Below are positions 284 to 43,361 of a DNA stretch of 64,000 nt, piece by piece. A program made the position numbers and the translations under genes. Location: NCBI GenBank assembly GCA_002269645.1, contig NIVC01002112.1:1-64000 (forward strand). The letters run 5' to 3'. This DNA comes from Macrostomum lignano. Taxonomy: Eukaryota. Under the pieces are notes generated by a model. The model worked only from the letters and a program-made list of their open reading frames with translations. It made no database searches and was not told the origin of the DNA. Position 1 is the stretch's first letter, and each line of letters starts with the position of its first letter.

Positions 284-550
284 TTTGAACAATGACGGAA
301 GCGTCGGAGGGGCCAACGGATATCTATCAGGTTGATGGCGGTCACGTGACGATTCTCTCGAGGCTGCCAGTTTTGCTGGCCCGTTCGCATTCAAGCTCTG
401 CATCTGGAGCTGTACGCGCAGCTTTGGCTGCTCAAAGTCCAAGCACAAGCTCATAAAAGCATCGTCACGGACTGTCACGATTGAAAGCCGCTGATAGTCA
501 AGCTTGATGGCAAGAATTCAAGCTGCTGATGAGGACGACGCTTGCTGCTG
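284..550 (+). CDS. Probable upstream exon of the giant gene (part of VWD domain), broken by apparent indels
   Basis: Acceptor ttaacAG at 282-283 and donor GTGAGT at 551. The 3' end reads ..RLLL in phase 0 into VNGKSVNVPY of the next exon, but no single frame is open. Confidence 0.5.
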
Positions 551-651
551 GTGAGTGGTTTAAACTCGCAAAAAAACTTAGTCTTTAGGAATGTAGAGTT
601 TTGAAAAATACCTCTAATAACTACGGGTACCCTGAATTATATTTCGGTCAG

Positions 652-1469
652 GTGAACGGAAAGTCCGTGAATGTGCCGTACAGCGAGCACAAAATTCGAG
701 CTTTCTACTCTGGCGAGGATCTCGTACTGGTGAGCAACAAGTGCGGATTCTGGGTGACCTTTGACGGCGAGTTTACGGCCACGTTCCGCCTGAGCTCCAA
801 CTTCTACAGAGGCCGAGTGTCCGGCCTTGCTGGCAACTGCGATGGCAACAAGGCCAACGACAACTTCGGCAATCTGAGCCACGCCTACAAGCTGTGGAAG
901 AGCAAAGGCTGGGTGAAGAACTGCAAAGGTCGGCCAAAGAAGTGCGGGTGCCATACTAAAAAAGAGAGGCGAGAGGCTGAGAGAGCTTGCAGAAAAGTAA
1001 TTGGACGCCATGGCTGTTCAAACACGGAGGTCCTGAGGCCATGCGTGATCGATTACTGCAGCACCAGGTATCGCCCAGACCTGCAGAGGAAAGTTCTGTG
1101 CGCCAATTTCTACCTGCACTCGAGACGATGCGCCCGTAATCACCGTCCAATCGCCTGGAGACACAAGAGCGGCTGCGGTGAGATGGGAATCTTTTTAGGC
1201 ATACGAGACTATAAGCGAGCTGAAATAGAGAAATCTCATTAACAATCTGGCGATTTTGATTTTCAGTCCTGAGTTGCGGTCGGCACCAACACTTTAGCCG
1301 CAAAGCGAACCCCTGCCCGAAGACTTGCGACAACCATTTCTTCGGCACCCCGAGGCGTTGCTACAAGCTTCCGAAAGCGGAGGGATGTCGCTGCAACAAA
1401 GGCTACGTATTGGATGGCACCAAGTGCGTGAAGCCAAAACACTGCGAGTGTCTGGCCAAGCTGTGCATC
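652..1469 (+). other. VWD (C-terminal half)-C8-TIL domain cassette of the giant protein
   Basis: VNGKSVNVPY..WVTFDG..RVSGLAGNCDGNKAND (VWD); C8-type Cys pattern ending AWRHKSGC; CGRHQHFSRKANPCPKTCDN..CRCNKGYVLDGTKCVKPKHC (TIL). Confidence 0.85.
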
Positions 1470-4400
1470 GACCGAGTGTCGCACCACAAGTGCCGCCACT
1501 GGAAGGCCCAAGGCAGATGTCGTAGGTACCCAGAAGTGATGGGCAGGTTCTGTCGGCTCACCTGCGGCATGTGCACGCCTCATTGTCGCAACCAGATAAG
1601 TACGCTCCTTTGCGAACAGATAAAGAAGAAGGGCAAATGTAGCAAACAGTTTTATCGCGTCATGTGCCAGGCCACCTGCCAACCGAATAAATGCCGTAAG
1701 TTCGTCGTCACCCAACTCGTTGCTACGCTCGTGTATTTAAATGGCGAACACGTGCTTAAACTGAGTCGCAAAACTTTCTATTCCAGGTTGCTCAGCTAAG
1801 CGACGCATTGTGTCAAAGTGCTCGGACAAATACAAGAACAAGGCTGTTACCACGCTGCGCTGGTTTCCAGACTCCAGAGGCCGGTGCAGAAAGAGCGTAC
1901 TGATACGCTACCATCCTTGCGGAGGTAAGCTGGAAGCGTATTTTCTGTCTGGAGCCAATTGTATTTCTACACATATTATGAGCTAATGTTTCACCGCTTT
2001 CTCGATTGCAGCTTGCCCGTACATAAGCAAAGTCCGTTGGTACAACTGCAACTATTGCAAAGGTGTGCAGATTGGCAAGCGACTTCTGCAGTACCGAGAG
2101 AAGCACGGAAAGAAGAGGTGTGTAAGAGTTCTACTTCTTATTAAGCGCAAGTGCCCTTGTCCGCCCATTGGCAAGAAGAAGAGCATCAGCTATACCGAGT
2201 GCAGGAATAATGTTGTCACGGTGCGAATCACCAAAACGTATAAGCCTACAAGACGTTGTTCTCGATGCGAGAGAAAAACGAGCACAAAAGTTGTGAGGAA
2301 AATCAGTAAGTTAGCTAGCGAGCGTCTTAAGCGCTTCTCCATTGAACTCGCGTTTGCATCGAAATTTTTACTCTAACAACAAAAATTTCAGACTGTACAG
2401 GCTTCTTCCACACTGGAAAGTGCACTCCAGGCCGCAAGTACTACTTTCGAATCACCTATAAGCGCTATGCTCACAAATGTCGCTGCCGGTCTCGCAAAGT
2501 GAGCCGGAAGAAAATTATGTGCCGCTGCAGCAAGCCAAAGTCTGTCTCTGTCTGCAAAGGCAGCTACTATCTGATCGTGACGACCCACTGGAAGCTGAAG
2601 AACGGCCGCTGCGTGCCTCATCAAACAAAAAGGACACGGAAAATCCGCTGCGATCGTAACCAACAAAATTTTGTGCGCTGTCATCGAAGCTCTTGCAAGG
2701 CTTTTAGGCATATCAGCTATTTTCACGTGCGCAACTGCAAGTGCCTGAAGTACTCCAAAGTAAAGCACATCGGAAAATGCTGTACGTATTTTCGTACGAG
2801 TTTTAGTATTTCAACTCGTCAAAATAGTTTCTACTTTTGAAATTAATAGAAAAGTTTATTACTGAATTTCAGGCTGTCCGCGGAGTTCCAGAGTTGTTGC
2901 TCGCATTAATCAATACTGGAAGAAGATCATTACTGTGACTTATACACTGATAAAATATCGCTGTATTAAAAAGATTATTATTCGCAAAATCCGAATCAAA
3001 TGCCCGAAAGGTGGTGTAATTGTTAGTTGCGACGGACGAAAAGGTCAGCGCGTCTTCACGAAGTTTTGGTATGAGAAAAAAGGAAACAACTGCATTAAGA
3101 GAACGTTGACGAAGAAGGTTACTGTCAGTAAGTGGAGACAGAATGACTGTCGATTAGCAATGGAAGCTTTATTGATGGTGCCGATCCATGTCGCTTATAA
3201 AACCGATTTAATTCCATTTTCAGAGTGCAGACGCGATGTGAAACGACTAGCGGGTCCATGCCGCCTGCTGTCGGGCAACGTTCGCTACCGGCGGGTTGAG
3301 TTCCGGTATTACAAGCGACGCTCAGGCAGCTGCTCCTGCGTCCCGGCAAAACGCGTCGCTCGCGAAATGTGCGGCTGCCGCGGCGGCAAACACACCAGGG
3401 TAACAAAGTGTCCCAAGGGTTGCACTACGAAGAACTGCGGTCGCCAGTGCACGTTCTCCAAGCTTTTCTATTTCTACAAAGCTTTTGGAAAGCGTTGCCG
3501 TGAGCATATCTTTAGGAGGCTTCACTTCCGATGCTGCTGCCGGCCCAACCGGCGCGTGAAAAATTGGTGTAGGAAGAATCAGTATCAGATGCGGCAAATT
3601 AGCTATTATCAACTGAAAGCGTACAGATGCCGTAAAGTATACAAAACAAGCAGTAAGCGGGTGCGCTGCAATCGAAAGCCGGAGACCAAAAGGATTCCCC
3701 ATCCGAAGAAGGGTTACTACTATCTGGCTACTTACAGCTGGTACGTCTCGAAGTGCAAGTGCCGGGTGAGAATTACCAAACGAGTCTGTAGAACGCACTG
3801 CCGATCGAAGAAAATAATTCGCTTTTGCGACAAAGTTCGCCGTGAAAAAGTCACTCGACACATAATCTGGCGTCTGCAAGGTTGCAACAAATGCATCTCT
3901 AAGGTGCACGATCGCAGAGTGCCTGTTCGCTGCAGCAAAACTGTTAAGAAGTGGAAGCACTGCAACAAGCGTACCGGCATTGTCACGCACTACAGACAGT
4001 GGTGGTATAGAAAAGACTGCCAATGTCTGAAGAGAACGACCACGAAGAAGCTTCGTTGCGGTAAGTATCGAATCATATTAATAATACATATTATGTTTAC
4101 ACTGCTGATCCATCGCCTCTCTGATCTCTTCTGAGCTGCCTGAACTCAGACCATGCTCATTCAAGCAAGGCAGGATGTTCAAATCCTATAACCTCAACTC
4201 AGATCATGCTCATTCAAGCAAAGCAGGATGTCCAAAGCCTATAACCTCAACTCAGACCATGCTCATTCAAGCAAAGCAGGATGTTCAAAGCCTATAACCT
4301 CAACTCAGACCATGCTCATTCAAGCAAAGCAGGATGTTCAAAGCCTATAACCTCAACTCAGACCATGCTCATTCAAGCAAGCAGGATGTCCAAAGCCTAT

Positions 4401-7400
4401 AACCTCAACTCAGACCATGCTCATTCAAGCAAAGCAGGATGTCCAAAGCCTATAACCTCAACTCAGACCATGCTCATTCAAGCAAAACAGGATGTCCAAA
4501 GCCTATAACCTCAACTCACACCATGCTCATTCAAGCAAAGCAGGATGTTCAAAGCCTATAACCTCAACTCACACCATGCTCATTCAAGCAAACAGGATGT
4601 CCAAAGCCCATAACCTCAACTCACACCATGCTCATTCATACAAAACAGGATGTCCAAAGCCAATAACGGGCCGCAGCTACTGCAATCCCAAACGAAATGC
4701 CTTCGAGAAGAAAATCACTTTTTGGATTCTGTCGAAGGGCCGCTGCCTGAAGCGAAGTCGTATAGAAAGAAAAAAGGTAAAATGCTCCTGCAAAGTTCAG
4801 AAAAGATCGGAATGCAAGCCTAAGAGCGGCGTTAAGGTTATCTACATCGGTGTAATGCGACCCAAGAATTGCAAATGCCGCCTAGTCTGGTCTGTGCACA
4901 ACAAGAGGCAGAGATGCAGTAAGTAAAATTGTGAAAAACTACTGCTAATATTGAGTTGAAATTTCGTGATTAGAAGGCAATTTACAAAATAACTTTAGAT
5001 TGCCACCGAGAAAACAAGCAAGCAGGCCGGCTGACCGTGCACTTCTGCGACAAGCGCAAGAACCGCAAGGGAACCGAAAAATTTCACTTCGTCCTGGTGC
5101 GCGGCAGGTGTGTTAAACGATCTAAGAAGACCTACAGAAACTTCCGCTGTCCTCGAGCCTACTATGAGAAGCGAAACTGCAACGAGGCCAGGCGCCTGCA
5201 GTTGGTGCTGAGGTACTACTCAGTGAAGAGGAACTGCAAGTGTGTCAAACTCGTACAGCGCAAACACGTCAAATGCGGTTGCAGTGGCAAAAAAGTTGAG
5301 CTTAAACGCTATTGTAAAAAGGTGCAAGGTGAAATAATAAAAGTCCGAATAACAAGAAGGTGGAGCAACCGACGCCACGTGTGCGTTACTAAGAAGAAGA
5401 CCACGAGTCACCGAGTTTGTAAGTTAATCAACTGTTGTTAAATATTCTAGTCTTCAAGCACATGAAGCATAGTCTAATCGTGGCATAAGACGACAGACTT
5501 TTGCAGCTTGACTAAAAAAACGCGCCAGGTGCTATTATCACAAAAAATAGGGAACTGTACAAAATAACACTTGTTTCTAAAAGCCACCATTACCCTTCGC
5601 AGTGTGTCGCAGCAAGAAGCGATATGTCAACAGCAAGTGCATCAAAAACAAATACTACATTGAGACAACGATCTACCACGAGCGCAAGGGTTGCAAGTGC
5701 ATTGAAAAGCGACTCAAACGAAAGAGAAATTGCCGTAAGTATTAGTACTTTCTTAATAAATCATAGTTAGTATAAATTCCGCTAAATTTTTTTACCTTGT
5801 TTTTTCTTTGCTAGACTGTAAGCGAATTATCCGACGCGGCAAGTGCCCACGACATGGCTATACACGTCGCGAAGTAGTTGAAGTTCGCGTGTGGGACATG
5901 AAGCATCGTCGGTGTCGCACCAAGCGCCAGTTCACCCGCCAGATCCGTTGCCGCTGCCCCAAAGGCTACAAGCGCCGATATTGCGAGGCCGGAAAGTGGG
6001 TGACGAAGTCAGTGCGGTTCATTCTAAAAAATACGCGCTGCTATAAAAAAGTCTCGAAGAGCAGCCGCAAGGTACACTGCCGTCGTGAGATAAGACACCG
6101 CTACGCCTCTTGTCAAGGCTGTCACCGATACATTTATACGCTGGAGCGGCGCCTGGATCCAAAGCGATGCGCCTGCTACTTTTCTGCGATTGAACGGCGG
6201 CGCTGTCCCTGCTGCTGCCCCAAAGGTTCCAACACGCGCCGTTGTGTTAAAGATGACGAATGGGAGAGAGTTTTCACGCACAATGCTCCTCTTACCGGAC
6301 GGCGCTGCGGTTGCCGAACATGGAAGACGCGCCGCCGCGAGAAAGTGTCCTGTTCGACCAGAAAAACTTACAAGTGGTTGAAATGTAATCGTCGCTCATG
6401 CCACAGTCACCAACAGGTAGTTAGCATAAATTTTCACATTTAAATGAGCAGTTATTGAATCCAGTCCTTACTTTTCCTTCAATAGGTAACATACTATAAA
6501 GCTAAGCGGTGCCGCTGTGAAAAGAGGCAACGCCTGACTGGCCGTAAGCGCGTCTGCTGTTGCCTGACGAAGCCACGGTTTAGCAAATTTTGCAAGAACA
6601 GCAGCGTCTACGAAAAGAAAATCTACTACCAACTGCACAACTGGCGCTGTAGACGGCGCGTTCGCAACCGTTTTCTGCATCGCTGGAGCTGCAAGCAAAA
6701 GCCAGTCATAAAAGTTGGAAGGTGATTGTTACTTAATCTTTTTTTTTATTTGTTTTAGCAGGCAAACAATTAAACTTATTCGCATATTCTGATTCCAATA
6801 CTCTACAGATGCAATAAAGGGAATTGCTATCAGTCCGTACACACTCTAATAAGTGTAGTTGATAAACCGCGCTGTCGTTGCAAGAACGTTGTGCGCAACC
6901 GACACAGGAGACGGTGCTGCTGCATTAAGAAGCCGCATAAAAACACGAAGTGCTTGAAAAACTGCTGGGTGACCACTTACACGAGTTATAAATTTGATGG
7001 ACGGCGTCGGGTATGCGTTGCTAAGATCAACCGCAGGACTAACTGCGTCAGTTGTCCAAGAAAAAGTCCTGCAGTTGGCGAGTGCAATAAAAAGACTTGT
7101 CGACGGCGCATCACGTATTTTACATATTCAATGGACAAATGTAAATGCAAGAGGCGCACTTACTATCGCTACAAAACCTGCTGCTGCCCAAAACCGTCCG
7201 TGTCGGGTCCAGTTTGTAAAAAGAATCGATATCGGGTGTGGTACTACAAAACTTGGAAGCTGGTTCATGGTCAATGCGTTTCTAAAGTCAAAGAGTCAAT
7301 ACGATCTGTTAAGTGTCGCAGAGGTGTCATAAGGGTGCTTCGCTGCAACAAAGCCACATGCCGTCAAGTTGTGAGGCGCGAGGTCGTGAGTTGAAGCGCT

Positions 7401-10400
7401 GCCGCTGTTTAAGCAGTTGGCGAGTGACACAGCGAACCTGCTGCTGCCGGCCAGCACACATTATCAACACCAGGTGCGAGCGAAACCGTTACCTCTATCG
7501 CTACAAAACCACCAGAAGACTCAATCAGAAGCGTGTGTGTGTCAGTCGCACAACAAAGCGCCTGTTGTACAAGGTTAGCAACTGTCGTACCACCGAAAAG
7601 AGAGGAGCCTGTAACAAGCGAACGCGACACTCTACTGTTTACATTACACACAGAAAGATTCACAAATGCAAATGCATTGTGTACCGCCGATCAACGCGCC
7701 GGGTGCTGTGCAGTAAGTTCTCATTTGCAATATTTTTACTAGACAGACAAAATCAAATGCAGTTTGTTTATTTTTACTAAATGTCATACTTTTAGGATGC
7801 AAAGGTTCGAGCGAAAAGAGAGGAAAGTGCAGCAAGACTACCTGCAAAATGGCTATTGTAAAAACGTGGTTCACCTCTCATGGTAAACTTGACAATTTCA
7901 AATGCAAGCGACACCAGAGAGTATTCTACCTGCGCTGCTGTTGCCACCCTCGACCGACATACAAGCTGTTCTGCAACAAGCGAACTGGCTCCACCATGAA
8001 GCGGCTCACGCGGACTGTGTTCGTCGCGTCAAGCAGAACATGCATAAAGCGGCATTCCACTGTTGTTGTGAAAAAACTTGGTGAGAAATCTTACCCGTTC
8101 ATTTCAGTATAAACGAAATGAATCCATTATGCAATGAAAACTGACTGGCCGTCATTACATTTTAGTGTGCCCAAAGAATTACTGTCGGTCAAGCAAGTGC
8201 AATAAGAAGACTGGCTACAAAGTGCGCTACTGTTACCATTTTACCAAAGTACGGGGTCTGTGCAGATGCAACAAACGCATTACTCAGAAAAAGATTATTT
8301 GCAGTGAGTAAATTTTTTATAAGCTATAATCTTTATAATTTTTCTTGTTTTATATGAAGTTGTATTTTGTAAATTTTACCGAAATCCAGGCTGTCAACAA
8401 AGCAAGCGCGTTAGCTTCTGTCAGGGCCACACAAAGAAGATATCAGTGATTACATATTGGAAGCTTTCAACTCGAGAAAACAGGTGCATTCGAATGGTGA
8501 AGCGCGTGACTAATCACCTAGTCTGTCCAAAGAACCATTGGGTGACACGTTCATGCAAAGGTTGCCAGGGAGTGAAGCATATTCATCACTACCTAATGCG
8601 ACGCTGCCATTGTCTTCGAAAAACACGTTCTTACCGCATTCGCTGTTGTTGTCCGAAGTCCCACCACAAGAAGCGTTGCCTTGGAAACAAGTGGCTTTTC
8701 GAGCAAGTGAAATATAGATTGCGACATGGTGTCTGTAAGAAGACTGTCTGCAAAAAACAAGTACCCGTTGCTTGTCCAAAAAAGAAAACCAAGCGTGGAC
8801 AGTGCAAGGGCTGTGTCAGGAAGCACTATACATGGTACTACCACGTTCGAGGCTGCAAATGTCTGTTGAAAAAGCGAAAAGTCCGAAAAAGTCTTTGTTG
8901 CTGCCCCAAGCCTCGCAAGTATGTGCAGTGCAAGGGTGGCGTGAAGCAGAAGGTATGCTTGTCCTGGAGCCTGTGTTCCGGCAGCTGTTTAAAGAAGCGA
9001 CACGTCACTACCTCTAAAGTGATTTGTCCTTGCAGTACAATAAAACGGTTCGCTTGCAACATGAAGTCACTCAAGCAGAAGGCAGAAATCACCAGCTATT
9101 CACTTCAAGGCTGTAAATGTGTCAAGAAGCTTCAAGTAAAGTACGTGCATTGCAAGTGTCGGCCTTCAACAAAAAAGTTCGAGAAGTGCGGTAAAAAATC
9201 CAAGCGACGAGTGTTTCGCATTGTATTCCAGCTCTATCATCAGAATGGCAAAGTTGTTTGCAAACCAAAGCGCTATCTGTTGTACTGGGAGCCGTGCCGG
9301 TGCAAGGCGTCACAGCGAACCAAAACTTGCGCTTCTAATGGGCGAGTTTTCGTAACTGTAATCAAGAAATGGAATTTGTGCAAGCGCCACGGCCGGAGGG
9401 AGTGTGTACTGAAGACTTCATTGTTGCAAGAAGCGGTAGAATGTCAAGGAAAGAGTGTCAAATGGTCTAACTGCAAAAACTTCCGCACGACTCGTACTGT
9501 TATTAGACAGAAGCCTGTGCTTTGCCACTGCAAAAGCTTTGTTAAGAAAAAAGTATTTGCTTGCAGTAAGTATGCCAGGGTTGATGACTAATTTCTTAAT
9601 GCACCGGTTTTCTCCACATATTTAAACATTTGCTCAAATATTTCAGATTGTAACAAGAAGTCATACAAGAAACGAGTCTGCCATCACAAAACCGGTATCA
9701 TTGCTGTAATCCAGAAATCGTTTCACTCTTGCTGCGGTGCCACCAGCTGCAGTTCCAAGAGCCAAACTTCGTATTATCCGGTGAAATGTTCAAAGCGTGA
9801 GCGTGTCTCCCGACTATCTCGGAAATGCGGTATTATGCATCAGCACGGTTGGTACACCAAGTATCTGCTGACATGGAAGGTACGACAGGACTGTAAGTGC
9901 GTCAGTAAGCAAAAGAAAGAGATGAAGCTGTGCCGTTGCAAGAAAAATTCAAGCCGCACTAAATGTAGCCGCAGCGGTCGCTACTTCGTGACAGTGCGCT
10001 ACACATACAAACGCAAGGGCTCCACCTGCCACTTGACTCGAACTGAACAGCGACGGCCTGTTAAATGCAAGGGCAAGAAAGTGCAAATCAAATTTTATGG
10101 ATGTTCAAAGTGCCGGCGGCGTGTTTCTCTCAGTCAGTGCTACGTGCATTCTTGCCGTATTCATCACTATAGAAAATCAGGTCTGCAGCGCTGCTGCACT
10201 CCAAAGCCCAAGACGCGTCACTATTGCGATGCCCGAAAGGGTCGCCGTGTATGGGAGACGACAACATACTCTCTGGTCCCGAGCAAGCCCCTCTTGAAGG
10301 ATCGCGATGGTCGAGTGCGGGTTCCACAGCTTAAAGTCGTATCCAGGAAGAGCTATCGATACGTGAATGTCCGATGTCCCAGAGGGGAGAAGAAAGAACA

Positions 10401-13400
10401 TTGTGATCGACGCACCGGGCTTTGGAGAAAAGTGGTAACTACCTGGCACATAGTCGGTTGCAAATGCGTTAAGAGGCTGAAGCGCTATAGTGGAAGATGT
10501 CGTGAGTTTTTTATATTATTGTTCCTTCTACCTATTCAGTGTTATCTGCTGGAAAACTAATGCAACTTTTAAAACATTTTCGTTTTATCAACCAGGCTGC
10601 CAGCCTCCGAAAGTTCGATGGGGCAAGTGCCGCAATCGGTATATGGTAAAAACAGTGATATACTTCACACTGAAGAATCGAGAGTGCATCCGGCAGGTAA
10701 GGAGGCACAGATATCTGTGCGCATGTCTGAAGGATCGCAAGTTTACAGTGTGCGATGGACGTGGTCGCTGGAAGACTTGTCAGATCAGCTACCAACTGCA
10801 GCGACAAAAGCAGCGTTGTTTAAAACTGAAGCAGTGCCGCAGTCGGCCGCACACTTGCTCTGCGCCAAGAGAAAAACGCGGTCCGTGCATCCGCTGCCGC
10901 CGAATAATCACGCGATACGTGTGGCACCTTAACAAGAAGAAGTGCAAATGTGAAAGGCGTGTACAGACCAGGCGGGCTGACTGCGACTGTCACAAGAAGA
11001 ATAGTTCCAGGACTGAATGCAAGCGCGGCGCATTTATAACTACAATTTACCGATACAAACTGATTGGGGAGCGATGCGTCCGATCCGTCTCCAAAGTGGC
11101 GAAACCTGTATGTAAGTAATAAATCGGCTTCTGCCTACTTACATATTTTCTGCTCGTATTCCTGACCGGTGAATTGCGCGTTCATTGGAAATTCAATAAC
11201 CACCAACTCCATAGATTGCGATGGGCGACGTAGAAGCAGGATTATTCGTGGCAGCTGCGTCACAGCCCGAGGAAGTAGCCATCGGGGCTATCAGAAGCTC
11301 ATAACTGAATGGAAAGTAAACCGAAAGTGTAGGTGCGTGCGTCAGCATATCGTGCGCTGGGTTCCATGCGTGTGCAAACTAATCAGCAAGTACAGGACGC
11401 GCCGCTTTTCAAAGTGTATCGGTGGCTCAACTGTTCGCCATACAACTGTCTTCTACAAGCTGGTTGGCTACAAATGTATCAGAAAAGTGCAGACACGACA
11501 CAAGAAAATTAGTAAGTTGATGATGACAGTTGTGGCAAATTAAAACACTCAGTTGCTTTCGCATTCAGCCTAGATTGTTTAGATGCAAAATTGATGCAAA
11601 TTATACGGTTAATTTTCAGAATGCTCGAGATCAAAGACGGTTACTGGAAAATGCAAGCTTAACAAATATGGCGACAGGTATTCTGAGATCCGTCTGTTGC
11701 GCCTGGTTAGCAACGGACGATGCGGCTGCGTTTGGAAGCAAAAAAGCCTGAAATACCGAATCTGTCGGTGCCGAAAGGCGAAACGAGTTAATCGGTGTGT
11801 GAACAATAACACCCGGCGCACTGATCTCTTTACATTCCACCCGGTGCGAGGAGCACGGATCTGCAGACGCCGATTGAAACGAAGCGACAAAAAGATACGC
11901 TGCAGAGGAACCTATAGTAAAAAAACCAAATGTCACCGCTGTGGATTCATCGTGCACCACTACAATTCTAAACCTATCAATTGCAAGTGCGTTACTCGAC
12001 GGGTGCGCGTGGAGAAGCTGAGGTGCTGTTGTCAGAAAAGTGTCACTAAGCGATCATGCGACACTAGTCGGCATATGTGGGTGACTGTTACTATTAGCTA
12101 CAAGCTGCGTCGTTACAGGTGCATCCCCAAGCGAACAGTTTACACTAAACTAGTGCGGTGTGGTAGAAAAAATCCCGTCTATAAATTTTCACGTGTCAAA
12201 AAGGTTTCCGCAAAATTTTCAAAACCATCTACTATGCTGTCGGATGCGGATGCAAGTCGAAGACGACTGTGTACAAGCAGCGCTGTGCTTGTTCTTCGGT
12301 ACGAAAATATGTCCGCGGGAAGTGTGTTGGCTGGTTCGCTCTTGACATCTGGCTGGCTTATAAGCTCAAGCCAACCGGAAAGAATATACCAGGAACTAAC
12401 AAGCCTCAGAAAAAATGCGTGAAATATGTGGCCCATAAGAAAAAGCGCCGCTGTAAATGCCCAAAAGGCTTCAGGAAGCGCATTTGCAAGAGGCATAATC
12501 TGGAAATTTTCGAGACCGTCACTTATCATCTGCGTGGAAACAGTTGCGAGCGCAAGCGTAGCGTTCGCAATAATCGACTACCGTGTTCTACAAAACTTCG
12601 ATGGGTTCGCACACAGGTAATGCCTCGTGCCTGCAGTAGTCGAAATAAATACGTTCAAGTTATTAAGAAAATCTACGTCTATGCTAAGAACTGCAAGTGC
12701 CTCTATGTGACTCGAAAACACACGCGTATATGTGACTGCGCTAAGAGGCATGGTCGAAAAAAGCTGGTTAAATGCGTGGGCAATAACAAAGTGGTGACTT
12801 ACACAGAGTGGTGGGTGCCCAAGGGCTACGGTTGCAAAAAGATGTCTCATAAATCGGTGCGACTTGTGCGCTGCAAGGGCGCGAAGATTGTGCCCGGAAA
12901 TTGCAGTCGGAAAGGTTTCCGCATCTATTATTTGTACCAGCGGCGGGCGAAAAAATGCCAATGTATTTGGGTACTCGTGAAGCGCGTGACTGTTCCATGC
13001 AGGTAAGAAAAACATTAGAAAATGTATCTTTGATATGAGTGGCTGTCATAGTTTTATTTTTCTAGTTGCTTAATTACCGAATTCACCAATTCAGGTGCCG
13101 CAAAACGGTCGTCACAAAGAAGTGCATATCCAATGAAGTTGTGACAGTTACAAAGAAGTGGCTTCTTGTTGGCAAGAAGCTGAAGGCCCACTGCAAGCTT
13201 GTAAAACGTACTCACAAAAGAAAGGTGCCGTGCAAAGTTGGTCGATATGTAAAACAATCGCGGTGCAACTTCAAAGGGGTCAAGCACATTGAAACGACCG
13301 AAATCAGCCTCAATAACTGCCTCTGTCGTAAGCGTGTGACCCGACGCAGCTGCCGCTGTCACTGCCGAAAGATACCTGATCGACGCTTCTGTAAAAATGG

Positions 13401-16400
13401 TCGCATTTTGGTCACAGTGAAAACAGCATCTAAGCTTCGTAACTGTGCGTGCTATAAAGATAGCAAAGTTTCCCGCAAAGCTGTGCGCTGTAAGAAGTCT
13501 ACTAAAACTCGTGGTCCGTGCAGGAGAGGACGTAATGGAGACAAGTACCGCAAGCTGACGCACATTCAATGGACAGTCCGGAACTGCAAATGCCGAAGCG
13601 TTCGCAAAGTTACTCATCAACTCTGCGGCTGTGACAAGCGTCGTCAAGTTAAGAACAGCTGTCTGGCTGGCTATATAAAGGTCACGAAAATCACTGAACG
13701 ACGACTGGTACGTGGTCGTTGTCGACGAATTCTCGTTGGCAAGCGACGCCAACGCTTGAGCTGTGGTCAGGTGAAAGTGAAAAAGGTTTGCAACAAGAAG
13801 TCTGGACAGCTTAACGTTTTTGTGACGAGGCCATACGTTAAGCACTGCAGATGCTTTAAAAAAGTAACGCGGCACATACGCCGTTGTGGTAAGTATTGCG
13901 TTTAAATTTTTAGCTTAGTTCGTGCAAATCATGGCGTCAAACGTATCTTATTTTTAAGTAACAATGCACACTCAAACAAAATACTTTCAGGTTGTCATCA
14001 CGGTAGCAAACTAGTTTCGACTGCACCGTGCAACAAGAAATCGTGTCGCCAGAGGCTGCTTTTTAAGAAACAGGTTCTCAGTGGCGAAAAATGCATTTGG
14101 AAGAGTTATCATCGGCATCGCGTGTGTTGCTGTAAGGGCTACAGACGCACTGTTAAATGCGACCGCAAACGAGGGTACGTCATCACAACTATCACCAAGC
14201 GAGTTCTCAAACAGTGGAAGTGTATCAAGAAGGTTACTAAGAGCAGCAGGAAAATTAGTATGTGCTGTTGTTTTTAGCTCTTAATACTGGAAATGTTACC
14301 TTAAGTATTTGACATGCAATATAAAATGTTTCATGATATTTTCAGAGTGCAAGCGTCATAATACGGTTTCCAAACAAAAGCTTCCTGGCGGTGTGCTGAA
14401 GGTTACCCGTTGCTCGGTTAAGCGGCAGGATTGCAAGTGCGTGAAAAGCTGCAAAACTGTGTTCTTGAGATACAGTGAGTCCCGTTTAAAATTTTATTTT
14501 CATTTTTCTTCCGCTCAGGCAAGGTGGCGAATGAACATCGTTTTTTCTAACATTAACATTACAGAATGCAAGAAGCCAGTGCAAAGAGTTCTTTGCAAGT
14601 GTTCTCGTGGCCGTTGTCGTAAGGAGCGCTACATCACCGTGTGGAGACTATCGAATGGTAGATGCCTCAAGCAGACACGTCGCGTGGATAAACCGATCCT
14701 TTGCAAACCGAAAAAAATGACTCGTAGTTGCTGCAGTAAACCAACAAAGTACGGATTTTATTTGGTTGAGACGACCGTCTCCTGGTATCAAAAGGCATGT
14801 CGCTGTCATAAAAGAGTTCAAACTCGTTCGGTTGTCTGCCGCTGTTTGAAGCCACACAAAAAGAAGATCTGCCACCGGGGACATATAGTTACATTCCATT
14901 ATTCTTACCGATTAAGTCGTGGTCGCTGTGTGCGGGACGTTAAGCGTCAATCACAGGCGGTTCGATGCGACACAACTTGGCGGCTGTCACACAGTACAGC
15001 AGGAAAACCAAAATACTATAAGGTATACAAGCGCTTTGTCCGATCTGGATGCAAATGCATACGGCAAACCAAACGAGTGCTGTGCTACTCTGATTGTCGT
15101 CGGTGCACTTTGTCATACAGGTGCGAAAATGGCAATCAAGTTGCGGCCATTCGAAACTGTTGGCGTTTGGTTGGATGTCGTTGCGTCAGCTATAGAACTG
15201 TCTCTAGAAAGCGTGTGTCATGTCCTAAATCGACCATACAACGAAATTGCAAGCGCTGTAATCGCACAGTAATAATCAAGCAATACAGCGTTCGCAAGTG
15301 TAAGTGCATTATGAAGAAGCAAGTGAAGAAGAGCAAATGCTGTTGCAACAAGGCAACAACGACCCGAGTTTGTATTCGCGGTGCGATACGAATCAGACGG
15401 ATTACTCACACGCTAAGAAATGGTCGCTGTTACTCAAAAACAAAGGACTCTTTCAGGCGTGTGAACTGCACACGCCGCGTGCTCAGGGCTATCCAGGGAA
15501 GGTGCAAAGGAGGAAAACAACGGTACATCGTGCACTACTGGGTAAAGATTGGCTGCCGTTGTGTGCGCCGTGTCCGCTCTGAATTCCGAAAGTGCGCTTG
15601 TGCCCACAAAGCTGTCGATCTTTTCTTGGTAGTTGACCTGTACGGAAAAGACAGGCGTGGCTACAAGAAACGAATAGTCAGCTTCCTAAAGACCGTTTCC
15701 ACCTACTTTTTGCACACCTCTGCAAGTGTTCACATTACTATGGTTTCCTACAACTGGAATGTACACGTTCACAAATTGAAGCATTTGAAAAATCTACCTA
15801 TCAAGGCATTTACCAACACAAGAACCGATTTGTGCGGGGCTCTTAAGGAAGTCAATAGGCGTCTACACGCTAAGTCCCGACCGGGTGTAGAAAAGATTGT
15901 AGTAATCATTACCTGCGGCAAACATAGCAAGCAGCACAAGACAGTCGCACTGGCCGACAAGATTAAGCGCAAAGCCAGCGTTTTCGTTGTTGGCTTCCGT
16001 CCGATTCCCAAATCCGGTCTATACGTCAAGTGGCTGGCTTCAAAACCAATCAAAATGCATTACATGGAACTTGGAATTCGCCGCAAGTAGGTTAACCATT
16101 TCTTTTTGATGCAAATTTTCTGTATTTGAATTAAGTTTATGACACTTGTTTCAATGTTAAGATGCTTCAACTCATACATTCTGTAGGTATCACTTCTCCG
16201 CCACGCGCCTGTTTGAGAGAATCTGCAAGAAAGCTTGTGCCAAGCCGGTCGTTAAGCATTCCGCTTGTCACAAACACAACTGCAGGAGAGTGTATACACG
16301 CACCACATTCTATTTGGATCGGCGTAGAAAGAAATGCGTGCGCAGATCCAAAAGCTGGTGGAAGCTGTGCTGCTGCATTCACAGAGACAGCGTTGAAAAG

Positions 16401-19264
16401 AAGTGTTACAAAAACAGACTGTACCGAGTTGTCACCTCATACCGATTCAAGAAGCACGCCTGTCATCGAAGCGTGCGCCGGTATGACATTTCCGCTCAAG
16501 TGCATGCAGCCTGTCGGCCACGCTCCAAGCTTCACCGAGGACCGTGTCGCAAAGATGGCTGGAGGAAAGACACGATAGTAACTCGGCATGTTGCACAGTG
16601 CCGCTGTAAGGTTGGCCGCCGACACCAGCTCATACGCTGCCGTTGTCCTAAGCAGCACGTTGTCAACACCTGCGTTCGGGGAAATCACCAGCAGCGCTGC
16701 CACTATACTTACACTCTCAAACCGACTGGGTGCACCAAAAACCGCAGATGCCGCACTTCTCGCGTAACGTGCAAGACTCGAAAAATAGTCAGGGGTAAAT
16801 GCAATCGTTCGAGCTGCAAGAGAAGTATGGGAAGCATATGGTACACTGTGCGAAACTGCAAATGCAAGCGTCATTATAAAGTGTGGAAGGAAACTTGCTG
16901 TAAGTTCAATTTTCTACCAATGTAGTTAATTTTCTACTCAATCAAACAGTTACAAACCCTAAGTGTTATGTTATTTCAGGTTGCAAGCGGCAACTTCAGA
17001 AATACCGCTACTGCGACAAACGTTCGCAGCAGCATGTTGAAGTCCATTCTTGGCTTGAATTCCACAAACGCAGTTGTCGCCGCGTGTCTCGCAAAATTTA
17101 CCGACCAGTCCGCTGTCCTTCACCTCGAACGAAAAAATCCAAATGTGCTGCCAGACAGAATGGATTCTATCGAAAGTGGGTCGAGTGCTATTGGAAGAAG
17201 AGAAATTGTGTCTGCATCAAGTACACAAAGTCGCGCTATGAGCTTTGCAGATGTAGGCGCGGTTACGCAACCAAGAAGTGCCGCTCCGGCTCGTGGGTTT
17301 ACATTCACCATTATTGGCAGAAGTCTGGAAATAAGTGCATTGCACGCAGCAAGATCACCTCAAGAGTTCGTGTAACGTGCAGCTCCAAGCGTCATAGTGT
17401 TACTGGCCCGTGTAATATCGTTAAGGGAAATAAAAAGTACGCGCGAGTCGTGCAGACATGGAAGCGACGCGTCGGTTGCAGCTGCAAAACCGTTTCCAAT
17501 TCTTTCTTGAAGCTGTGCGCCTGTCAGAAGCCATACAAACGCTACAGTTGTCTTAGAAATAACCGCTTAGTGATAACTGAGTATCGCTTCTTTGTAAGTG
17601 GTAATAGTTGCAAGCTTCGAAAGTTTACAAGCTACAGACTTATACGTTGTCCGAAGGCGCGCACAAAGGTGTCAAAATGTACAGGCAAGACTCAAGCAGT
17701 TATTGTTGTCATTCACAAGCCTATAAAATGTAAATGCGTATCGAAGATCTACAGACGCGTGGTGCAATGCAAGTCCAAGTGTAGAGACCTGCTACCCACT
17801 GGAATATGCAGAAAGTGGGCCGCTTCTAACAAGATTCAATTGTGCGACAAATACCCGTATTTCGCCAAGCGTCTTTGCGCGAGGACCTGCCATCGTTGCT
17901 ATGGTAAGCACTAACTTTGCTTTATAGAACACGAATATTGATATTTTCAACTGTGATTCAAAACCAATTCTCCCACAGGCTGCCCCAAAACGCGGCTCAT
18001 TTATGCCAAAAATTTCTGCCTCAGCAAGCAGCGGCACTTCCGACGCTCGTTCATTTTGGCTCAGCGCACCTCATTCGACGTTTGCATGAGCAGCTGTCAG
18101 AAAAACAGCAAATGCCGGGCATTCGACTATGATCATTCAACGCGAAAGTGTCTCCTTCTGCGAATCAATCGCAGAGGTCTCCTCCTGCGGTTCCCGTCGC
18201 TGAAGTTGCGCAAGACGCGAGACTGTATTTTGTTTGAGCGGATCTGTCCTACTAAATGTCCCTTCCGCCGCATCCTGAAGCAATACAAGTGCAGCTGCAT
18301 CAAATTAGGCAAGCAGCGCGTATGCTACAGGACAGCAGCGGTGGCTACGTGGAAGCGGAATCGCAGCGGTAGCTGCCAAAGGCGGGTGCACAAACTGCGA
18401 GTGCCATGTCGCAAATGCGAGGACAGACGAGAATTCTGCAAGAAGTCGAAGTGTTCCAGGCACCTCGTACGTCATCTGTGCAATTACACTTGCGGTGTTT
18501 GCAAGCGTCAACCGAGAGGCTACCACTGGCGCAGCCGCTGCTCCAAGTCCGGCTGGCAGAAGGACATTAGAGTTCAGGTCTACTACGATAAAAAACTACG
18601 TCTGTGGCGCGTCTCTGTCAGAATCAAAAACCTGCGCTGCGTCCGTTGCCAAGTCGGCTCTTACCAGTTGATCGGACCGTGCAAAAATGGCCAACGCAAA
18701 ATTACAAAGATCGTCGCCCGCTTTGTCAATGGCCGATGTCGCATCAGCTCTCATGCTAAGACTTATAGCTGCAAGAACTGCGGCTTAGTCACCAGAAAGC
18801 TGATTAGCAAGTGCTATCGTCACGGCAAGAAATGGATCCGGCAGGTAGTCACACTGTACACAATCCGTGTGAAGGGTCACTGCATTGTTCGCCGAAGTCT
18901 CGCCGTTTTCTCTTGCTCGCCGAAATGTCCGCGCGATCGGTCCACCGTGTCTCAGTGCAAGTGCGGCAAGCGAATCCGCTGCTTCATGTATTACGTCACG
19001 TATCCCGGATCGAACGTTTGCGTGCCTAAACGATACACCTCCAGCGAGAAGTGCGCCTCAACTCAGAGTGAGTCAAAGCTTTCACTAGCTGTCATTCTTA
19101 ACTAAATCTTTCCTAAATACCTTCTGGCAAATCCCACGAATCCCGCACGTCTTCCAGAATGCAAAGACAAAATCCGCCCTGTTGACTGCCTGTTCGTGAA
19201 GAAGAGCAACATGTGCCGCTCAATGCGCAGTCTGTGCGCCAGGACTTGCGGCTACTGCAAATGA
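652..19264 (+). CDS. Giant Lys/Arg/Cys-rich secreted-type protein (VWD-C8-TIL, ShK-like x5, long Cys-hairpin repeat region, degenerate VWA, PAN/Apple); 5' end outside window
   Basis: Exons 652-1177, 1267-1695, 1787-1924, 2012-2305, 2392-2781, 2873-3127, 3224-4060, 4649-4918, 4999-5418, 5603-5734, 5815-6416, 6486-6721, 6809-7712, 7796-8080, 8166-8303, 8390-9565, 9647-10501, 10596-11111, 11215-11511, 11620-13002, 13095-13888, 13991-14257, 14346-14474, 14565-16086, 16187-16899, 16980-17903, 17979-19067, 19158-19264(TGA). All introns are GT-AG and phase-compatible. Exons sum to 15,628 nt, or 5,210 codons after restoring single missing bases near 7392 and 12191. Confidence 0.9.
4140..4665 (+). repeat. 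53-bp intronic tandem repeat that copies the downstream intron/exon junction
   Basis: Unit CCATGCTCATTCAAGCAAAGCAG|GATGTCCAAAGCCTATAACCTCAACTCAGA, about 9-10 copies; the last copy is the true acceptor at 4648/4649. Confidence 0.9.
15600..16086 (+). other. von Willebrand factor A domain with degenerate MIDAS
   Basis: VDLFLVVDLYGK..HITMVSY..TRTDLCGALKEV..RPGVEKIVVIITCG..VFVVGF..WLAS follows the VWA strand/helix order. Confidence 0.8.
17979..18250 (+). other. PAN/Apple domain
   Basis: SFDVCMSSCQKNSKCRAFDYDHSTRKCLLL..LFERIC matches the PAN CxxxC..CxxFxY..C pattern. Confidence 0.8.
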
Positions 19265-19419
19265 CTCTGAAACTGATTCTCCTTTTCTGATTATCTGACA
19301 AATTTGGTGAAAAGTTAACATTTGGTGGATTTTTTCAATTTGATCAAAATATATTAATTCAAAACTTATTCTATCGGCTCTCTTTAACAATCTTTTTGGC
19401 GTCCATACAGCACTCATGA

Positions 19420-20420
19420 CAGTCAGTCAGTCAGTCAGTCAGTCAGTCAGTCAGTCAGTCAGTCAGTCAGTCAGTCAGTCAGTCAGTCAGTCAGTCAGTC
19501 AGTCAGTCAGTCAGTCAGTCAGTCAGTCAGTCAGTCAGTCAGTCAGTCAGTCAGTCAGTCAGTCAGTCAGTCAGTCAGTCAGTCAGTCAGTCAGTCAGTC
19601 AGTCAGTCAGTCAGTCAGTCAGTCAGTCAGTCAGTCAGTCAGTCAGTCAGTCAGTCAGTCAGTCAGTCAGTCAGTCAGTCAGTCAGTCAGTCAGTCAGTC
19701 AGTCAGTCAGTCAGTCAGTCAGTCAGTCAGTCAGTCAGTCAGTCAGTCAGTCAGTCAGTCAGTCAGTCAGTCAGTCAGTCAGTCAGTCAGTCAGTCAGTC
19801 AGTCAGTCAGTCAGTCAGTCAGTCAGTCAGTCAGTCAGTCAGTCAGTCAGTCAGTCAGTCAGTCAGTCAGTCAGTCAGTCAGTCAGTCAGTCAGTCAGTC
19901 AGTCAGTCAGTCAGTCAGTCAGTCAGTCAGTCAGTCAGTCAGTCAGTCAGTCAGTCAGTCAGTCAGTCAGTCAGTCAGTCAGTCAGTCAGTCAGTCAGTC
20001 AGTCAGTCAGTCAGTCAGTCAGTCAGTCAGTCAGTCAGTCAGTCAGTCAGTCAGTCAGTCAGTCAGTCAGTCAGTCAGTCAGTCAGTCAGTCAGTCAGTC
20101 AGTCAGTCAGTCAGTCAGTCAGTCAGTCAGTCAGTCAGTCAGTCAGTCAGTCAGTCAGTCAGTCAGTCAGGCAGTCAAGTCAGTCAGTCAGTCAGTCAGT
20201 CAGTCAGTCAGTCAAAGTCAGTCAGTTTCAGTTTTCAGTCAGTTTTCAGTCAGTCAAAAAGTTTCAGTCAGTCAGTCAGTCAGTCAGTCAGTCAGTCAGT
20301 CAGTCAGTCAGTCAGTCAGTCAGTCAGTCAGTCAGTCAGTCAGTCAGTCAGTCAGTCAGTCAGTCAGTCAGTCAGTCAGTCAGTCAGTCAGTCAGTCAGT
20401 TCAGTCAGTCAAGTCATCAG
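19420..20420. repeat. (CAGT)n microsatellite, about 1 kb
   Basis: Pure tetranucleotide array, degenerating after about 20170. Confidence 0.98.
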
Positions 20421-20865
20421 TTTCACAGTCAGTGGTCAAGTGTTTTGCCCTCGATCCGGGGCGCCACATGAGAAGCAGTCAGAGACAGAGGAGAGAGCAA
20501 AGTGGAAGCATGAGAGTTGCACTGCTAGCTGAGTGCAGGGACGGCCCAGTGGGCATCAGGCACGCAGCTGATTCATCCCCTGCTCCACCCTTCCGTCTCT
20601 CCGTCTCTTTTTCTCTCTTCTGAATTTCTCTGTCCCCAAAAGCTACCCCTGCCTCAGCTGTGCCTGTCATAACCAATGGCAACGCAAACCGTCTCTCTAC
20701 CGTTGACTTGCTTCCCTCTTCTCACTGCCTCTCCCCCTGCCTAAAAGCTTACCTGCAGCAGCAGAGAGAGGCTTTGAAATAAAGGAAGGAAGGCAGAGAA
20801 ATTAATTTTTTTCTTTTCAAGCTCTCCAGACTTGACTAGCAGCTGGAACAGACAGTTACTGCAGC

Positions 20866-26179: not shown

Positions 26180-43361
<17,182 letters not shown>

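Follow-up and report, generated by a model that had tools for sequence, protein, structure and literature searches.

A stretch of 64,000 nucleotides from the flatworm Macrostomum lignano (assembly GCA_002269645.1, contig NIVC01002112.1; the whole stretch is called the window below) contains the coding sequence of a giant secreted protein, the bulk of which consists of about 45 tandem modules of about 87 residues each. The module and the accessory domains that accompany it recur across Platyhelminthes, in free-living as well as parasitic species. Taking the evidence together, we consider it probable that this protein acts as a multimerising, polycationic extracellular scaffold; that the scaffold is a structural or adhesive one we infer only.

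A giant gene of tandem cysteine-rich modules

The gene lies at window positions 640-19264 on the + strand, with 30 exons, 27 GT-AG introns and 5,213 codons, and ends with a stop at 19262-19264; its 5' end is missing or damaged in the window. The domains and arrays along it are as follows (window coordinates):

297..639 (+): damaged 5' part of a VWD domain; residues 41-127 of paralogue P0006 in pieces, in all three frames and with stops
640-864 (+): C-terminal half of the VWD domain (Pfam VWD, E=7e-9)
943-1176 (+): C8-like cysteine-rich stretch, labelled by position and cysteine pattern only
1275-1451 (+): TIL domain (Pfam TIL, E=9e-8)
1464-1574 and 1584-1694 (+): two ShK-type domains (Pfam ShK, E=1e-6; the second by pattern)
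1787..15595 (+): first array, about 40 modules of about 87 residues, interrupted by short introns (module profiles)
8644..8895 (+): the module modelled below, with flanks 8605-8910; the two-module model spans 8605-9168
15614..16226 (+): VWA domain (Pfam VWA, E=2e-5), containing the intron 16087-16186
16233..17770 (+): second array, about 5.5 modules (module profile on the spliced protein)
17780..19261 (+): C-terminal cassette as a whole
17780-17899 (+): first ShK of the cassette (sub-threshold Pfam ShK match, E=7e-3; 17.3 bits, cut-off 20.9)
17981-18247 (+): PAN/Apple domain (Pfam PAN_1, E=1e-8)
18290-19054 (+): degenerate half-units enclosing a ShK-like 6-Cys motif (18416-18502) for which the Pfam search gave no match
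19160-19258 (+): final ShK (Pfam ShK, E=6e-5)

Once the 27 introns are removed and two 2-nt frameshift patches are applied, the spliced sequence of 640-19264 reads through without an internal stop. The spliced protein is unusually composed, with 10.1% Cys, 14.2% Lys and 14.2% Arg (28.4% Lys+Arg) against only 3.4% Asp+Glu, which gives a net charge of +1306, or about +23 per module; it has 6.1% Thr, 2.7% Pro and 12 N-x-S/T sequons. All long stop-free stretches between about 1260 and 19260 lie on the + strand, and they contain 7-12% Cys and 21-35% Lys+Arg. The Pfam-A search of the long open reading frame (ORF) pieces returned the accessory domains only, with no TSP_1, lectin or EGF match. On whole long homologues the same kind of search was mostly empty, possibly owing to the composition-bias filter of HMMER, and sub-sequences gave matches. 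No signal peptide was found in the window; the paralogue PAA59660.1 (P0006) has both a signal peptide and a full VWD domain (E=4e-14), which are incomplete or missing here.

In choosing splice sites we weighed the consensus, a short intron length, the phase and the match to deposited proteins. Choosing them by the maximal score of the module hidden Markov model (HMM) was dropped as uninformative, because such a score rewards the deletion of any non-matching sequence. Most introns are 69-184 nt long, one is 588 nt, and they are mostly of phase 1 with the consensus GT[AG]AGT...YAG; 15 of them match junctions in deposited M. lignano proteins. By tblastn, the exons are 97-100% identical to M. lignano proteins, including PAA60779.1 (BOX15_Mlig010738g1, partial; residues 1-179 at 100% identity), PAA59660.1 (BOX15_Mlig029998g6, partial), UniRef A0A1I8FT25 and Mlig029998g4. 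The model of A0A1I8FT25 ('Apple domain-containing protein') takes 14658-14916, 15023-15456, 16881-16979 and 17293-17978 as further introns. These four junctions have weak splice sites and skip or remove whole modules or change the frame, and they are probably prediction errors. The centre of the gene, 7.4-12.8 kb, is in no deposited protein: a 381-residue stretch from it (8446-9588) had no match in a word-indexed search of deposited proteins, and a search with the module alignment as query returned one fragment only. The present M. lignano gene models at this locus are therefore fragments, or skip repeats.

Two tandem repeats at the DNA level accompany the gene. A 53-bp repeat at 4139-4667 (10 copies, 95% matches; alternatively scored as period 211) falls almost wholly within the gene's single long intron (4061-4648) and produces a spurious open frame ('MSKAYNLNSDHAHSSKAGC...'). 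A 30-bp repeat of 8.5 copies occupies 1-254, directly upstream of the damaged VWD region. The start of the window is probably near a contig end, since the matching protein in the databases is numbered gene 1 on its contig and is marked 'partial'.

The repeat was defined with an HMM iterated from 8 hand-picked units, with which all frames of both strands of the 64-kb window were searched. At E<0.01 the one-half HMM settled at 43 copies, every one of them on the + strand. Relaxing the threshold to E<0.1 gave 49 half-units, again all on the + strand, from 1789 to 17755, with no match in the other five frames and the remaining 45 kb; at E<1 there were 60 half-units inside the region versus 5 elsewhere in the window. 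Because the copies are confined to this region and this strand, the repeat is real and far beyond chance. Consecutive units alternate strictly between an A half, C1-x-C2-P-x7-C3-x18-C4-x12, and a B half, C5-P-x8-C6-x17-C7-x-C8-x10. A two-half HMM detected 33 full double units at E<0.001 within single ORF pieces; run on the spliced protein, it detected 44 modules (E<1e-3).

The whole module reads x-C2-P-x7-C3-x18-C4-x12-C5-P-x8-C6-x17-C7-x-C8-x10-C1'. The introns support this phasing. In phase 1, they interrupt either the x codon that separates C1 from C2 or the codon immediately preceding C5, so that the exon-defined unit runs from C2 to C1'. The A-half and B-half profiles are themselves alignable (hhalign probability 77%, E=2e-5), with C2 corresponding to C5, C3 to C6 and C4 to C8; the module thus arose by duplication of a unit of about 43 residues.

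Thirty aligned double units show a mean identity of only about 24% to the first sequence, with nothing but the cysteines conserved, and Cys fills each of the eight core columns, from C2 to C1', in 94-99% of 484 distinct modules from 123 family proteins, the set used for all module statistics below. The expansion is therefore old, and fittingly Tandem Repeats Finder reported no DNA-level repeat within the coding array. Besides the cysteines, each half has one conserved aromatic column (Y/F/W in 69% and 42%), with a Leu two residues later. Hydrophobic and basic positions alternate along the long strands, and the turns are rich in G and N. Trp makes up 0.8% of module residues, no column exceeds 10% Trp, and there is no Trp ladder. 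One module, at 10192-10500, lacks C4 and carries an insertion of about 10 residues ('PSKPLLKDRDGRVRVPQ') without usable splice sites; it is a degenerate copy, which keeps C2, the proposed partner of C4.

A preliminary description of this DNA had already recognised much of this. The two example peptides that it quoted lie where it placed them (7179-7316 and 7083-7187, + strand), its limits, 1787 and 19067, coincide exactly with exon boundaries in our gene model, and the alternation it saw between units opening with CxC or CCC and units closing with CxC is real and regular, as the 33 and 44 double units show. Its picture of dozens of diverged copies, expanded long ago around a conserved cysteine spacing, also agrees with the identities, the absent DNA-level repeat and the cysteine columns given above. 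Its idea of a new module is right in substance. Its unit of 40-50 residues, on the other hand, is half of the true one, which has about 87 residues and 8 cysteines. It also pictured a rigid rod with cation-pi (R/K-Y/W) ladders, a putative arrangement; the conserved aromatic of the modules is a single position per half, and Trp is scarce.

Predicted fold and disulfide pairing

AlphaFold2 gave a confident model of one module, in a 102-residue construct (mean predicted local distance difference test score, pLDDT, 91.8; predicted template modelling score, pTM, 0.65). Six strands are predicted, at construct residues 20-26, 29-40, 43-54, 60-68, 71-82 and 85-97, so that each half consists of one short strand followed by a long hairpin. 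In the two-module model the strand pattern is repeated (pLDDT 90.4, pTM 0.51). The fall of the pTM at constant pLDDT, together with the large root-mean-square deviation (rmsd) of the Foldseek superpositions on compact proteins described below, hints that the array may be an elongated, somewhat flexible chain. If the halves were arranged end to end with 12-residue strands, each would measure about 4 nm, and the roughly 96 halves would add up to an estimated few hundred nanometres.

To derive the disulfide map, we applied Fisher tests to the joint presence or absence of cysteines. The strongest signal comes from an optional Cys located 3-5 residues beyond C6, paired with the central Cys of the C-C-C that follows: both are present in 127 modules and both absent in 326, with 20 discordant, so that the pair comes or goes jointly in 453 of 473 modules (p=3e-90); the window has an example at 8770-8895 (CKGC ... 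CCC). Among the core cysteines, co-loss links C6 with C1' (p=5e-8), C2 with C4 (p=2e-6), C5 with C8 (p=7e-5) and C3 with C7 (p=2e-4; C7 is missing in all three of the modules without C3). This suggests that C2-C4 and C5-C8 are equivalent clamps, one for each half, that C3-C7 crosses between the halves, and that C6-C1' closes the module. An optional fifth bridge would then join the additional Cys beyond C6 to the central Cys of the next 'CCC' and reach into the linker between modules, and this covariation explains the 'CCC versus CxC' variants. By reasoning rather than measurement, and given the predicted strands, the proposed partners would come to lie at one and the same strand end, whether the halves are stacked end to end or side by side, the latter as a sheet or sandwich. 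The module delimited by the disulfide map, C2 to C1', coincides exactly with the unit bounded by phase-1 introns.

This map bears on the view of the preliminary description that an independent hairpin of 40-50 residues is the functional unit, with A and B merely two sequence flavours. The halves are indeed homologous, the one-half HMM detects both kinds, and introns can flank a single half (the exon 8166-8303 encodes a lone B half and is flanked by phase-1 introns). However, the conserved cysteines of each half are odd in number (3 in A; 5 in B when C1' is included), so that at least one bridge must leave the half. Moreover, A and B alternate strictly over about 45 periods, and the modules without C3 have all lost C7 in the other half as well. 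Each half is also predicted to have three strands instead of forming a simple hairpin. We therefore regard the single half as an improbable functional unit, and keep the module of two coupled halves as the unit in what follows.

Relatives, proposed function and integrity of the gene

An exhaustive profile search of 1.84 billion representative sequences returned 110 family representatives at E<1e-3, 64 at E<1e-10 and 26 at E<1e-30, and the top match is a protein of 5,275 residues with 49 matched stretches. Among 30 clusters looked up, all those with an organism name belong to Platyhelminthes, and the rest are metagenome or run assemblies; the absence of the family outside flatworms is so far read only from these organism names. 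The named relatives include Echinococcus granulosus (W6UV63) and Sparganum proliferum, as well as Echinostoma caproni, Paragonimus kellicotti, Dicrocoelium dendriticum, Calicophoron daubneyi, Trichobilharzia regenti, Cichlidogyrus casuarinus, Protopolystoma xenopodis and several M. lignano paralogues. The claim of a new module thus holds in part: the repeat is disulfide-rich, all-beta by prediction and outside the curated families, but it already sits in these 110 database representatives, without a functional name.

Reading of the non-repeat segments showed that the accessory domains are shared as well. The Echinococcus and Sparganum proteins show a VWA domain, and the ShK-PAN-ShK-ShK cassette occurs in both of these, in a monogenean (Cichlidogyrus), in an M. 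lignano paralogue and in three more sequences. An N-terminal VWD-TIL-ShK-ShK arrangement was read in two family proteins, P0003 and P0021, and one M. lignano paralogue has it placed after the array. The common architecture is thus array - VWA - array - ShK - PAN - ShK - ShK, established in the window by Pfam and in the relatives by reading. The automatic name of W6UV63, 'Collagen alpha-3(VI) chain', is misleading and was presumably acquired through the VWA domain. In one genome paper, an expanded gene family that is annotated as 'collagen alpha-3(VI) chain' appears among the tegument components (PMC8384839); its link to W6UV63 is the shared automatic name alone.

VWD-C8-TIL units drive the disulfide-linked multimerisation of mucins and von Willebrand factor, so the giant protein probably forms disulfide-linked polymers too. 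According to this proposal, the N-terminal VWD-C8-TIL unit would join the chains into a disulfide-linked polymer, and the disulfide-stapled array, presumably resistant to proteases and shear, would present a very long polycationic surface. Such a surface could bind polyanions, for example the sulfated glycans of mucus, glycocalyx or matrix, and the VWA, PAN and ShK-type domains might add protein or glycan contacts. A folded module with a charge of +23 and 4-5 disulfides would be an unusual building block for polyanion-binding materials. More tentatively, and with rather less confidence than in the scaffold itself, it is possible that the module is a new fold confined to Platyhelminthes and that its arrays are sub-micron, polycationic, disulfide-stapled rods, polymerised through VWD into a flatworm-specific extracellular material such as matrix, mucus or surface coat. 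In that case its conservation from Macrostomum through tapeworms, flukes and monogeneans would make it both a structural protein that defines the phylum and a parasite-specific target at the surface or in the matrix. The family definition has a use of its own: flatworm proteins that were unnamed, 'hypothetical' or misnamed become a defined family, for which the module is delimited, a disulfide map is proposed, the structure is predicted with confidence and the architecture is seen to be conserved. Where giant secreted proteins are conserved among parasitic flatworms but missing in the hosts, they have practical interest as components of matrix or surface.

Several points weigh against the scaffold proposal. 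The multimerisation through VWD is argued from other families, and we found no description of the module family in the literature. The alignment given to AlphaFold2 consisted only of the 30 paralogous modules, that is, of repeats from one gene. The loss of C7 correlates also with the loss of C1 and C2' (p of about 1e-7 to 1e-8), which lies outside the proposed map and may reflect generally degenerate or terminal modules. Finally, the gene has visible defects. Apparent frameshifts lie within B halves at 7389-7390 (+), where the C-x-C ... CCC tail continues in the downstream frame, and at 12186-12187 (+), in an AAATTTT run with the expected cysteine tail downstream; and 297-639 matches the N-terminal half of the paralogue VWD only through several frame changes and stops.

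The two frameshifts inside modules, the broken 297-639 region and the missing signal peptide raise the question of whether this gene copy is a decaying pseudogene. Apart from those defects, however, 5,213 codons are open. Moreover, a second copy in the same assembly (GCA_002269645.1, NIVC01002242.1) covers window 12567-20421 at 99.2% identity, with both frameshift sites outside the shared part, and differs by 19 synonymous versus 8 non-synonymous changes in about 5,980 coding bases. The resulting ratio of non-synonymous to synonymous rates (dN/dS) of 0.12 (p=1e-7 versus neutrality) shows, at the level of sequence comparison, that the gene is under purifying selection. The second copy, which ends 251 nt upstream of the P0049 gene (window-equivalent position 12567), has eight coding indels of 1-2 bases, all in the roughly 1.3 kb next to its contig end and at sites where the window keeps the frame, and this looks like poor consensus at contig ends in this assembly. 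Since the assembly makes such errors, especially near contig ends, the defects in the window are probably errors too. Therefore, decay seems to us an unlikely explanation, and we treat the gene as a working one. In the second copy the indel stretch (NIVC01002242.1, reversed, 1-1300, equivalent to window 12567-13860) has been annotated such that the gene is split into 'genes' of 150 and 1,595 aa.

A (CAGT)n microsatellite of about 249 copies (19420-20421) begins about 160 nt past the stop of the giant gene and yields a 351-codon 'SQSV' ORF that is surely no gene. About one fifth of the window downstream of the giant gene is tandem satellite, with arrays at 26686-28151, 28698-29696, 33948-35977, 40342-41022 and about 20 more places (examples are a 31-bp unit x47, (ACAG)n x250, a 23-bp unit x88 and (TGTC)n x174); these satellites cause many long spurious ORFs on both strands and strong swings of AT and GC skew in the composition profile. 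Also downstream are an intron-less ORF for a rhodopsin-type G protein-coupled receptor (32220-33560, -; Pfam 7tm_1, E=4e-16), which has a 22-residue poly-Gln run in the region of the third intracellular loop, and leucine-rich repeats (26180-26683, +; LRR_4, E=2e-27) followed downstream by long coiled-coil-like ORF pieces (39725-43361, +), which may be one gene interrupted by satellite-filled introns. Further on are exons of a tubulin-tyrosine-ligase-like protein (46753-47328, -; E=2e-16), of a cytochrome P450 (55679-58556, +; E=2e-8, heme-binding end) and of a protein kinase (60086-60667, -; E=5e-15, CDK-like by eye).

Comparison with known families and systems

The preliminary description had found the repeat loosely reminiscent of TSP1 and had named a significant match to a known family such as TSP1 or CTCK as what would overturn its novelty; Pfam, the PDB profile search and Foldseek gave no such match. 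Thirty modules compared with Pfam-A at E<=10 hit eleven unrelated families with one member each, and no TSP_1, Cys_knot, DAN or VWC. The module profile reached a best E of 0.26 against all PDB sequences. With Foldseek against the PDB, a target set that includes CTCK, norrin, TSP1 and properdin structures, the best E was 0.78 for one module (TM score <=0.29) and 0.14 for two modules (TM score <=0.19). The matches listed are generic beta-barrels with an rmsd of 19-30 Å, and no TSP1-containing PDB entry is among the 50 best listed for each model. Neither TSP1 nor CTCK is therefore supported.

The only hint of a known family is an automatic name. A UniProt rule calls a repeat-only 180-residue M. 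lignano fragment, A0A1I8HBY8 (P0119), a 'CTCK domain-containing protein', a name that is probably misleading and gets no backing from the Pfam, PDB and Foldseek tests. It is nonetheless worth asking whether the module is a very diverged CTCK/cystine knot or thrombospondin type-1 repeat, with no family of its own. C-x-C and G-x-C motifs are present, and the proposed bridges C3-C7, C5-C8 and C6-C1' nest in the order I-IV, II-V, III-VI, like a cystine knot. In CTCK domains, CxGxC and CxC motifs form an eight-membered ring. The modules contain C7-x-C8 but no CxGxC, the glycine motif G-x-C having a single Cys; a Cys two residues before C4 occurs in only 14% of modules, and the two putative ring segments would span 9 and 10 residues, versus 3 and 1. 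The module also comes in about 45 tandem copies versus a single C-terminal one. As for TSP1, each half is predicted to have three long antiparallel strands, as that repeat does. TSP1 repeats are marked by a WxxW(xxW) tryptophan ladder stacked with arginines and by a CSxTCG motif, and both WxxW and CSxTCG are missing from the modules. Altogether, we think a hidden member of either family very unlikely, and the module is best compared with them as a family apart.

So compared, TSP1 (PF00090; found in SCO-spondin, properdin and the flatworm Mlig-ap2) is, like the module, a small extracellular all-beta unit, disulfide-stapled and rich in basic residues, and it too forms long tandem arrays in giant secreted proteins; the module differs in the count and spacing of its cysteines and in that two halves are, by the proposed map, covalently coupled into a unit of 87 residues. 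CTCK and the growth-factor cystine knot share with it long beta-hairpins, C-x-C and the putative nesting of three of the four bridges. In contrast to the tens of tandem copies of the module, CTCK is one terminal dimerisation domain.

It is scarcely credible that the protein serves the flatworm duo-gland adhesive as its cationic cohesive component, within the Mlig-ap1/ap3 system, although it comes from the same species and is very large, secreted and strongly basic, since the module family is also found in tapeworms, flukes and monogeneans, which are not known to have duo-gland organs. Mlig-ap1 likewise has VWD and TIL (PMC6410801), but it also has a C-type lectin and 17 EGF domains, for which Pfam found no match in the window, and the K/R regions of Mlig-ap1 and the ap3 proteins of other flatworms are low-complexity Gly-Arg-Lys repeats (PMC6410801, PMC9229212, PMC6745481). 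These published descriptions set the giant protein apart, and identity with Mlig-ap1 or another known flatworm adhesive was rejected. What Mlig-ap1, Tmed-ap3 and Mile-ap3 share with it is the phylum and the kind of molecule, a huge secreted polycation, for which charge interactions blocked by heparin have been proposed (PMC6410801, PMC9229212). The basic regions of the giant protein are instead folded, cysteine-stapled modules, and its accessory domains differ.

The scaffold that we favour has its nearest architectural counterparts in mucins, von Willebrand factor and SCO-spondin, which also place an N-terminal VWD-C8-TIL unit (the C8 assigned by position in our protein) before a very long repetitive centre, within secreted chains that run to thousands of residues. 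Unlike in mucins, this centre is made of a folded polycationic cysteine module, with no O-glycosylated Pro/Thr/Ser region (Thr 6.1%, Pro 2.7%); unlike in SCO-spondin, it is no TSP1/LDLRA array; and the C-terminus is ShK-PAN-ShK-ShK, without the CTCK of the mucin/von Willebrand factor type. We may thus conclude that the domain family is new but its kind is familiar, namely that of tandem disulfide-rich extracellular modules carried by a giant protein with VWD; sequence databases already contain the family, so far unnamed and unstudied.

The closest analogy in kind is avian CREMP, a fibre protein with about 10% Cys and many small disulfide-stapled hairpin modules, in which Cys1-3 and Cys2-4 are paired within the module and which is thought to form an extended chain and fibres (PMC12723725). 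The giant protein resembles it in its content of about 10% Cys and in its many tandem disulfide-stapled modules, with no sequence or Foldseek relation between the two. CREMP modules, however, are much smaller, with two disulfides and flexible linkers, whereas the flatworm module would combine four to five bridges and six predicted strands with an extreme positive charge.

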